NCBI GenBank assembly: GCA_964057225.1
Contig: OZ059898.1
Span: 3,906,001 to 3,970,000, forward strand
Direction of reading: 5' to 3'
Source of the DNA: Auanema rhodensis
Lineage: Eukaryota > Animalia > Nematoda
Length of the DNA stretch: 64,000 nt
This document shows positions 36,924 through 39,677 of this stretch, one piece after another. Numbering within the stretch: position 1 is the stretch's first letter; each line of letters opens with the position of its first letter. The notes beneath the pieces were generated by a model. The model made no database searches. It was not told the origin of the DNA and was given only the letters and a program-made list of their open reading frames with translations. The translations under genes were made by a program, and so were the position numbers.

Positions 36924-37850
36924 TTACTGATCATACTTTTTAAACTCCATGCAATCAGGTGGTCTAACATCAACTTTTTTCTGCTTAATTTCATCCCAGT
37001 TGGTGGATAAAACAGTTCCGTTCGACTCTCTATAAAAAATCTCGAATATAAATCAGAGAAGTTATAATAAAACTGTACGAGAAGCTCTTGATCATAGCTT
37101 TTTTGACATCATCAGAAGCATCTTCATAGATTTTGCGGAACATGCGATTAACAGCAGCATCACCTTCAAGATCCTCATTATCTTCTTCGTCTTGAGCTTC
37201 CTGCAATTTGTTGTTGTTCAACTAACGAGAACATCCATACCTTTTCAACAGCATCCCAGTTTTTAGTAGCAAACACTACCGTAGACGAAGGGGTTGGATC
37301 AGCTTGAAGCAACGTTGGCCAACGGCCAGCAGAAGATTTCTTCATTTGTATTTCAATCTAAAGAAAACATTGTAACACTGGTCAGAAAACGGAGAATATC
37401 CACAGCAGTCAGAGATATCGCAGACTTTCTAGTCATCGTGCACAGTCACGTTATATTATAACAATGAAATGTACACTAACACTCGGCCTTTTGAGATCAT
37501 CACCCTGCTGCGGAATCGAACTCGGGCAGCTAATCTCTCACTTGAGATTATACCACTTAACCACAACCTTCGATGAAACATCCGTAATTATAAAACCTAC
37601 CTTTGATGGAGAACAAGATACAGAAAAACCATCTTTCACAACTGGCCCATGAAGTCGGCCCGAGAAAACAACTGAATCATCCACTTTAACAACTAAGACT
37701 TCATTATTGTAAGAAACGACACATGAATCAGCACTAGCTCCTTTTTTCAAAATGGTTATAGTTACACTATCATCAGTTTGGAAAAAATCGAACCTAAAAT
37801 ACAACATAACGATGAATTCGGTGTTGTTATCACCTTGGACGACCACTCAT
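36924..37850 (-). CDS. SUGT1: SGT1 HSP90 co-chaperone (CS and SGS domains, no TPR)
   Basis: [24 protein letters not shown] (CS domain); [33 protein letters not shown] and [14 protein letters not shown]...[11 protein letters not shown] (SGS domain). Confidence 0.95.
37399..37514 (-). ncRNA. Candidate intronic box C/D snoRNA/scaRNA
   Basis: In the ~240 nt SGT1 intron 2: C box GTGATGA (37503-37497), internal hairpin, C'-like ACGATGA, D box CTGA (37412-37409), 10-bp flanking stem TCCGCAGCAG/CTGCTGTGGA, then TTTT and a second CTGA. Confidence 0.65.
37504..37570 (-). pseudogene. Degenerate tRNA-Gly-like element (Pol III A and B boxes) directly upstream of the C box
   Basis: TGGTTAAGTGGTATAAT-19 nt-GCCCGAGTTCGATTCCG versus recalled tRNA-Gly(GCC) TGGTTCAGTGGTAGAAT-20 nt-GCCCGGGTTCGATTCCCG. 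Anticodon arm and acceptor stem are decayed. Confidence 0.6.
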
Positions 37851-38074: not shown

Positions 38075-39071
38075 TTAAAGAGCTCCCAGATGATCCTTTA
38101 CTTGCTGCTTAGTTAACCGATGAAATCCAGTTGCATCACATATAGCGACCTATTAAGGTTTCCACATAAAGTATTTGAAAAAATAACTTACTTCAACATT
38201 ATCTTCAGTCATTCCAACATCAAATGATTCTCTCAAAGTGAGCAAAGCTGTATGAATTCCATCATCAAGCTCTAAAGTTTCAGAAAATCTGAAAAGAAAT
38301 TGTCAAATTATAAATATTCATATACGCACCTTTTCTCTAAGAAACTTTTAGCATTGGCATCGTTTTTACCCAAAGCAGTAGCTTTCCATGCAAAATAAGC
38401 ACCCTGAATATAAACGATTCATAATAATTATTAACGGATAAGCAAACAGAAGGGTCGCTTTGGAAAAGAAGAGGTCTTCCTGGATTCTTATCCCATCCAG
38501 CTATAAGCAGAGATGCACCAAATGGTCGAACTCCACTACAAATAAAAATTAAAAATAGAATGATCAAAAAAGTTTACCCAGATTGAGTATATTCTTGCAT
38601 TACTGTAGCGAGACTAGTAACCAATTGAGTAGTTGGAATTTCTTCTCCATACATCAACTCATACTCCATGGCAATTTTACGACCACGGTTAACCAATATA
38701 CGAAAATCTGGACCCATACCACTGAAAATTACGTAACGTTACGTCACCGCATATAAAACATTATTCATTACCTATAAACACAGCCAATATGCTTACTGAT
38801 TTTTTCAATTTTTGGTTGATCATCACATAAAACAGAAGTCACGTTTTCAGTAGCCAATACTACACCATCCTTAGCTAAACAATGATCATTATTAAAAATA
38901 ATAATAGAATAGTACCTCTCAAACCAACAGAGGGTTGCCCATTCTTAACAGCATTTAAAGCATATTCAATTTGCATGAGTTTTCCAGATGGACTAAATGT
39001 AGTAAATTATAAAAAAAATTTATAACGAGTAACCTGAAGGTAGTCAATGAAAATCCATAATGATCTCCCAT
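38075..39071 (-). CDS. pas-2: 20S proteasome subunit alpha type-2
   Basis: [38 protein letters not shown]...[12 protein letters not shown]...[14 protein letters not shown]...[14 protein letters not shown]...KDHLGAL*; 8 exons. Confidence 0.98.
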
Positions 39072-39677
39072 TTCTAAAATTTCATATAAATATATATTAA
39101 AAAGATTATAATAAAATGAATAAAGAGAGATTTGGAATGACCAGAAGTTTTTGAATTAAACGATGATATTGAAGGTCCTTGGGAAATAATAAATACCGTA
39201 ATAAACGTAATATCTATGGGGCGCGCTTTCTCAAAAACTCAGAATGGTTAAAAAATTATTTGTTATGGATAGTAAAACATAAGGCTATTTTATTCGGCAA
39301 ACAACTTGGTAAAGTTACTCAGATTTGATAAATCGTTATTATAGTTATTTTACGCGTGTTGGATAACGAAAAGAGCGATTGAAATTGAGCATTCAACATA
39401 GTTTTATCGTTTAGATATTAATATTTTCTTGATCCCAATATTTTTTGATTAAGTTCTCCAACAACAATACCTACAGTGTGAAATAAATTATGATAAAAAA
39501 TCTTTCAATGCAATGATTGGACTATGCCATAATATATAACGAGAATGAAAATTAGTATTGTTTATTTTATCCAATTAGAGAAACTTTCGAGTTGAAGTAG
39601 TAGTTAGTTTTTTTCCAAATTTGTATTAAACTGAATTCTTTTTTTTTGATAAAAACTAAAGTTTCAACTATTTTTGA

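Follow-up and report, generated by a model that had tools for sequence, protein, structure and literature searches.

A probable UM2-type gene for a box C/D RNA, nested in an intron of an SGT1-like gene of Auanema rhodensis and predicted to guide 2'-O-methylation of U2 snRNA

We analysed a 64-kb stretch of Auanema rhodensis DNA (hereafter referred to as the window) and found, in the second intron of an SGT1-like gene, a box C/D RNA that is preceded by a tRNA-like leader and followed by a run of four T (T4). This element is probably a self-contained small-RNA gene of the UM2 type described in C. elegans, nested in sense orientation in its host intron and made by RNA polymerase III (Pol III), with a product that would guide the modification of G12 in U2 snRNA (Table 1). 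The original prediction, which had placed a box C/D RNA behind an A/B-box leader in an SGT1 intron, held in this respect: the A, B, C and D boxes and the T4 run were all present on the minus strand, at or adjoining their predicted places, together with the 10-bp stem that closes the RNA.

Table 1. Positions in the window of the host gene, the leader and the box C/D RNA
Feature	Position	Strand	Basis or remark
Host gene, SGT1-like (CS + SGS, without TPR)	36924..37850	-	Pfam matches exon by exon
Host gene exons	37850-37834, 37793-37601, 37357-37241, 37200-37079, 37029-36924	-	
Host intron 2, 243 nt, GT...AG	37358..37600	-	splice sites read from sequence
tRNA-like leader, UM2-type internal promoter region (predicted)	37512..37576	-	A/B boxes; no tRNA called
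A box TGGTTAAGTGG	37553..37563	-	motif located by script
Hairpin, 7 bp with 6-nt loop, where a tRNA has its anticodon arm	37531..37550	-	predicted fold
B box GAGTTCGATTCC	37512..37523	-	motif located by script
Box C/D RNA including closing stem, ~110 nt (predicted)	37399..37514	-	fold and model R1
Closing stem, 10 bp, UCCGCAGCAG/CUGCUGUGGA	37514-37505 with 37408-37399	-	fold
C box GUGAUGA	37497..37503	-	UGAUGA core at 37502-37497
D' antisense element UCAAAAGGCCGAG	37482..37494	-	pairs with U2 snRNA nt 20-8
Degenerate D' box UGUU	37478..37481	-	register from Rfam and U2 alignments
C' box CGAUGA, internal GU-rich hairpin before it	37433..37438	-	
GCGAUA element, spaced 3 nt from the D box	37416..37421	-	conserved in four nematodes
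D box CUGA	37409..37412	-	
T4 run, candidate Pol III terminator, 10 nt past the closing stem	37386..37389	-	

The exons that flank the intron, each searched singly, matched the Pfam domains CS and SGS, and all homologues of the largest host exon were nematode SGT1-like proteins. The intron interrupts the host protein between ...SCSPSK and IEIQMKK..., with splice sites that read AAAG/GTAGGT (5', at 37600) and TTTAG/A (3', at 37358). It had been singled out as unusually long, and its 243 nt indeed stand against 40, 40 and 49 nt for introns 1, 3 and 4. Directly upstream of the SGT1-like gene and on the same strand lies a proteasome alpha-subunit gene (38075-39072, minus strand), and this gene pair was kept in all loci that reach far enough upstream (L061, L062, L064, L069 and L072), the Mesorhabditis locus (L063) being too short on that side to show the proteasome gene. 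Since the proteasome-alpha gene directly precedes the SGT1-like gene across species, we regard the neighbourhood as orthologous; from its arrangement, the pair may constitute an operon. The Cooperia annotation fuses both genes into a single model.

The RNA carries the features of the C/D class, namely an RUGAUGA-type C box, a CUGA D box and a terminal stem that joins them, and the snoRNA region folds at -40.9 kcal/mol (z -3.25). No Rfam family matched it at the gathering thresholds. With permissive settings, the best-covering families were SNORD89 (RF00578, 18.3 bits against a gathering threshold of 41) and ceN69 (RF01651, 15.3 against 45 bits), both over the guide region AAAAGGCCGAG. Model R1, a sequence model built solely from Nippostrongylus, Cooperia and a Logan nematode, with the window sequence excluded, matched the window once, at 37405-37505 on the minus strand (47.1 bits, E 1e-13). 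Global MAFFT alignments of whole introns or of snoRNA pairs misaligned the boxes, and five-way and three-way alignments plus models were used for the comparisons below.

The antisense element next to the D' box points to U2 as the target. The U2 snRNA of this genome begins AUCGCUUCUCGGCCUUUUGG, and the D' guide pairs with its nucleotides 8-20 over 13 bp (12 Watson-Crick pairs and one G-U pair), with C37486 opposite G12 at position 5 counted from UGUU, as expected of an antisense element (at least 10 nt next to a D or D' box, target at the fifth position). When the RNA was shuffled with its dinucleotides preserved, 3 of 5000 shuffles reached a Watson-Crick run of at least 12 bp anywhere in U2. 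Because G12 lies five nucleotides from the degenerate D' box, its methylation is expected: fibrillarin should 2'-O-methylate U2 G12 and possibly G11. On the D side, a search that covered the rDNA unit and U2 gave no convincing target for the antisense sequence in either (best, 10 bp with 6 Watson-Crick pairs). The GCGAUA element in this part of the RNA is complementary to U2 nucleotides 1-5, and from this complementarity it may act as an accessory pairing with the U2 5' end. In four nematodes (the window, L072, L069 and L064), the distance from this element to the D box is 3 nt, and a similar element lies farther from the D box in C. brenneri ceN69 (AAAAGCGAU) and in the SNORD89 consensus (GAAGCGA). 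The U2 genes themselves form long tandem arrays with a period of ~2.46 kb (C1 10.95-11.28 Mb and C8; L006-L011), with at least 47 copies above the Rfam cut-off. A second candidate U2 guide on C1 was rejected as a truncated antisense fragment of a U2 gene (C1 10,941,168).

Methylation of U2 G12 is needed for splicing in human cells and was assigned to SNORD89 only recently. SNORD89 was shown to guide U2 Gm12 in a yeast system (PMC6984369), and its knock-down supports both Gm11 and Gm12 as products of a D' element that is followed by a non-canonical D' box, UUGC (PMC11863803). Judging from guide and target, the RNA described here is the functional counterpart of vertebrate SNORD89 (RF00578). The D' element of SNORD89, AAAAGGCCGA, addresses the same U2 nucleotides and is likewise followed by a degenerate D' box (UGUU here versus UUGC in mammals; PMC11863803), and SNORD89 also has an internal hairpin and a (G)AAGCGA-type element in its 3' half. 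Beyond the guide region, homology to SNORD89 is not demonstrable by sequence. Unlike the unit proposed here, SNORD89 lacks a leader and is processed from a Pol II-transcribed intron of another host gene, RNF149.

As judged by position and sequence together, the RNA is the orthologue of Caenorhabditis ceN69 (RF01651). Both have the same host gene, intron and box order, the guide core GCCGAG followed by UGUUAG, and GCGAU in the 3' half, whereas in ceN69 a further hairpin separates the C box from the guide, and the spacing from GCGAU to the D box is different. The guide reads AAUAAGCCGAG in ceN69 and AAAAGGCCGAG here, and these two differences may compensate for two differences in U2, provided that the Caenorhabditis sequence is ...GGCUUAUUAGC...; our literature search returned nothing on CeN69 or on the C. 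elegans U2 5' sequence. In C. brenneri, ceN69 was detected with 131.5 bits (L062 2405-2509) in the same SGT1 intron, which there follows ...TPSK and precedes IE..., with A- and B-like boxes (CAGTGAAGTGG and GGTTCGTTCC) upstream of the RNA and TTTT directly after it.

Comparison of the orthologous intron across nematodes, a check proposed with the original prediction, showed the layout to be kept in the SGT1 intron of Caenorhabditis, Nippostrongylus and Cooperia. The intron position is common to C. brenneri, Nippostrongylus and Cooperia, and in the latter two the intron holds a leader with A and B boxes, an identical guide (CUCAAAAGGCCGAG plus UGUU or UGAU), GCGAUA at a distance of 3 nt from the D box and, 40-50 nt downstream, a T4 run. 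In four species, A and B boxes can be recognised at corresponding places, and the remainder of the leader can no longer be aligned. Statistically, this conservation of the boxes is weak: model R2, built from the three orthologous leaders, had no match in the window under default filters, and with the filters off its best local match fell exactly on this leader but reached only 4.5 bits (E 0.12 in 2 kb). A further orthologue was found in a nematode from Logan (SRR23622334, L064 3462-3556, plus strand), where the RNA, with the guide CAUAAGGCCGAG (24.6 bits to SNORD89 and 22.1 bits to ceN69), resides in an intron of the proteasome gene and not in that of SGT1; both a leader and a nearby T-run are missing, and the SGT1 intron of this locus is only about 48 nt long. 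Besides this Logan nematode, the snoRNA was absent from the homologous SGT1 intron of Mesorhabditis (443 nt), of Dracunculus (123 nt) and of a second Logan nematode (about 65 nt).

The element is of no new kind, its layout having been known since 2006-2008 and its type of guide published in 2019-2025. Our literature search found no assignment of ceN69 or its nematode relatives to U2 G12 or to SNORD89, and neither the shared SGT1-intron position nor the leaderless relocated copy was found there. These results give the RNA, and by orthology ceN69, a concrete predicted function, the guiding of U2 G12 2'-O-methylation, and they show that distant nematodes have the tRNA-like UM2 layout in common at one specific locus. 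Since some lineages have the leader and others lack it, they offer a natural comparison between Pol III-driven and splicing-dependent production of one snoRNA.

Within the leader, the start-to-start distance of the A and B boxes is 41 nt, with a gap of 29-30 nt between them. A second copy of the A box, GTGGTTAAG at 37564-37556, overlaps the first and aligns with AGTGGTTAA of the orthologues, and, judging from the five-way alignment, a short stretch of this region may be locally duplicated (GTGGTTAA GTGGTATAA). The B box and the closing stem overlap by 3 nt, the end of the one being the start of the other, and the C box begins 9 nt after the B box, where the 3' end of a tRNA would fall, as had been noted at the outset. 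The anticodon arm had been described as decayed, but an intact 7-bp hairpin with a 6-nt loop occupies its place (37550-37531). As in UM2 units, A/B-like sub-motifs with tRNA-like spacing stand directly upstream of the RNA, and a run of at least four T follows within about 40 nt, with none inside the predicted transcript. The stretch 37592-37389 is free of any TTTT, although a T4-free stretch of such length occurs in 11-18% of windows here and is therefore not significant alone. A chance origin of the motif combination is unlikely. A loose pattern of A box, spacer and B box matched the two strands of the 64-kb window once, at the leader itself; across the whole genome, the succession of B box and C box was matched four times and the full A-, B- and C-box patterns eight times, versus none for the reversed control in either case. 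With motif rates taken from the window itself, the probability that such boxes jointly precede a given C box by chance is ~2e-5.

The likeness to the UM2 promoter of C. elegans snoRNAs, already suggested by the original prediction, is borne out by the layout. UM2 loci likewise have A and B boxes about 30 nt apart directly upstream of the snoRNA, a leader that is not a functional tRNA, and an oligo-T run of at least four soon after the RNA, and they are often intronic. UM2 loci were reportedly also described by Deng et al. 2006. The same layout is seen in the C. brenneri orthologue of the SGT1-intron locus, with a gap from leader to C box of 20 nt versus 9 nt here; other points in which the locus departs from UM2 units are the 3-nt overlap of its B box with the closing stem and its apparently duplicated A-box region. 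The leader is also more tRNA-like than the orthologous leaders, and all evidence of transcription comes from the C. elegans loci. There, promoter tests by Li et al. 2008 (PMC2527325) demonstrated that the A and B box-like sub-motifs, about 33 bp apart, are both needed for expression, that the start site, mapped by 5' RACE, lies 9-13 bp before the A box, that transcripts terminate at T4, and that GFP is not expressed, pointing to Pol III. Such a start site places the leader within the primary transcript, which is short-lived (PMC2527325).

We infer the use of Pol III at the SGT1-intron locus by analogy, since the UM2 layout is shared with C. elegans and with other loci of this genome, among them two tandem copies that each come with a leader and a T-run of their own. 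Under this model, TFIIIC would bind the tRNA-like leader (roughly 60 nt) at its A and B boxes, and Pol III would start ~10 nt upstream of the A box, near 37572-37576 as projected from the C. elegans 5' RACE data (PMC2527325). The polymerase would then read through the leader and the ~110-nt box C/D RNA and stop at the T4 run (37389-37386). The C/D kink-turn, together with the 10-bp closing stem, would be the assembly site of the C/D core proteins, and once the snoRNP has formed, exonucleases would trim the short trailer and the leader, which is unable to fold as a tRNA.

The same RNA could be an ordinary intronic snoRNA, released solely by splicing of the Pol II pre-mRNA, debranching and exonuclease trimming, with the A and B boxes as an inert relic. 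Its sense orientation and its distance of 41-44 nt from the 3' splice site fit such a route, as do the intronic orthologue of the Logan nematode that lacks leader and nearby T-run, the low score of the leader model and the lack of significance of the T4-free stretch by itself. However, an inert relic would not readily account for boxes kept at one place in four species despite a diverged leader, for a T4 run after the RNA in each of these four species, or for tandem copies elsewhere in the genome that each keep their own leader and T-run. Moreover, such boxes drive transcription in C. elegans (PMC2527325), and the intronic UM2 RNAs of that species are ~55-fold above their host mRNAs and uncorrelated with them (He et al. 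2006, PMC1474057). We thus consider an exclusively intronic route unlikely, though it deserves to be taken seriously, and a mixed case, with both routes operating, would fall between it and the Pol III unit that we favour.

A more far-reaching reading joins two proposals, that the mode of expression switched within nematodes and that GCGAUA has a function of its own. The RNA would be driven by a Pol III leader in the SGT1 intron here, in Caenorhabditis and in strongylids, and would be leaderless in the proteasome gene of another nematode. With GCGAUA at 3 nt from the D box, position 5 would face U2 A1, and the element would either hold the 5' end of U2 through a second contact or guide cap-proximal Am1 methylation. 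Taken as a whole, this combined reading is doubtful.

We further compared the leader with true tRNAs, and found it to be clearly tRNA-like yet not a tRNA. ARAGORN called no tRNA in the 64-kb window, and the Rfam tRNA model gave no match even at E 10. Read from the sequence, the would-be acceptor stem has two of seven pairs and the T stem one of five, and the fold of the leader alone is not a cloverleaf (z -1.4). Among the seven tRNA types of this genome that were compared, tRNA-Gly-GCC was closest (46/70 identical, z 7.5-9) and tRNA-Pro-AGG was second and nearly as close; the orthologous leaders were closest to Gly (Nippostrongylus), to His (Cooperia) and to none (C. brenneri). Of the proposal that the leader derives from tRNA-Gly, the closeness to Gly-GCC thus stands, but with Pro-AGG almost equal, orthologous leaders that disagree on the source and seven types compared, a Gly origin is plausible and not established.

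The original prediction also likened the locus to the tRNA-Gly-snoRNA dicistrons of plants, which RNase Z processes, and suggested two mutually exclusive folds, of the acceptor strand and of the snoRNA closing stem, or two routes of biogenesis. In a dicistron of this type, a tRNA or tRNA-like part would fold as a cloverleaf, and RNase Z would cut at its 3' end to free the snoRNA. Plant dicistronic tRNA-Gly-snoRNA genes were reportedly described by Kruszka et al. 2003. These genes, like yeast snR52, have a tRNA-type internal Pol III promoter before a box C/D RNA, as proposed here; unlike the present locus, where no cloverleaf is possible, they contain a functional upstream tRNA that RNase Z releases. 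A C box that starts at the would-be tRNA 3' end and a leader that is significantly tRNA-like, with Gly-GCC as its closest relative, would suit a dicistron, and according to a passage in PMC2527325 plant dicistrons use tRNA-Gly. Against it stand the poor stems, the leader fold and the absence of any tRNA call given above. In addition, the whole predicted precursor folds into separate leader and snoRNA domains and keeps the 10-bp stem, which leaves no basis for mutually exclusive folds or for recognition by RNase Z, and no stable UM2 fragment was recovered in C. elegans (PMC2527325). Neither of these claims is supported, and we regard a plant-type dicistron as very improbable at this locus.

That the unit is a tRNA-derived SINE or a tRNA pseudogene beside a snoRNA-like sequence by chance, as a genome rich in tRNA genes (~620 matches to the Gly-GCC D-arm word) might suggest and as the original prediction had named among its possible refutations in the form of a high-copy SINE, is refuted by copy number and orthology and merits almost no credence, given that the 219-nt unit is present as a single copy in the 181-Mb genome, is kept in the orthologous intron of three other nematodes and contains a guide that matches U2.

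Other loci of this genome with a leader, a box C/D RNA and a T-run were seen at C1 15.49 Mb (L022), C1 15.84 Mb (L023), C6 8.87 Mb (L019) and C7 15.84 Mb (L029). The locus L023 comprises two near-identical tandem copies, and L029 begins right after a junction that resembles a GT splice site. None of these other leader-snoRNA units was called as a tRNA.

The first-look count of tRNA candidates across the genome was 28,079. The ~620 occurrences of the Gly-GCC D-arm word fall mostly in dense tandem arrays (C6 9.61-9.73 Mb and 10.57 Mb, C4 17.55-17.59 Mb; L037-L060), and the sampled loci contain intact tRNA-Gly-GCC genes as called by ARAGORN. Tandem arrays were also found for tRNA-Pro-AGG (247-bp period, C1 17.25 Mb; L032), tRNA-His-GTG (157-bp period, C5 9.08 Mb; L026) and tRNA-Arg-TCG (period ~377 bp, C4 18.56-18.62 Mb; L076-L102). 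Some copies in the Arg-TCG array read as tRNA-Gln-TTG, with one C-to-T change in the anticodon and one change in the D arm on an Arg body.
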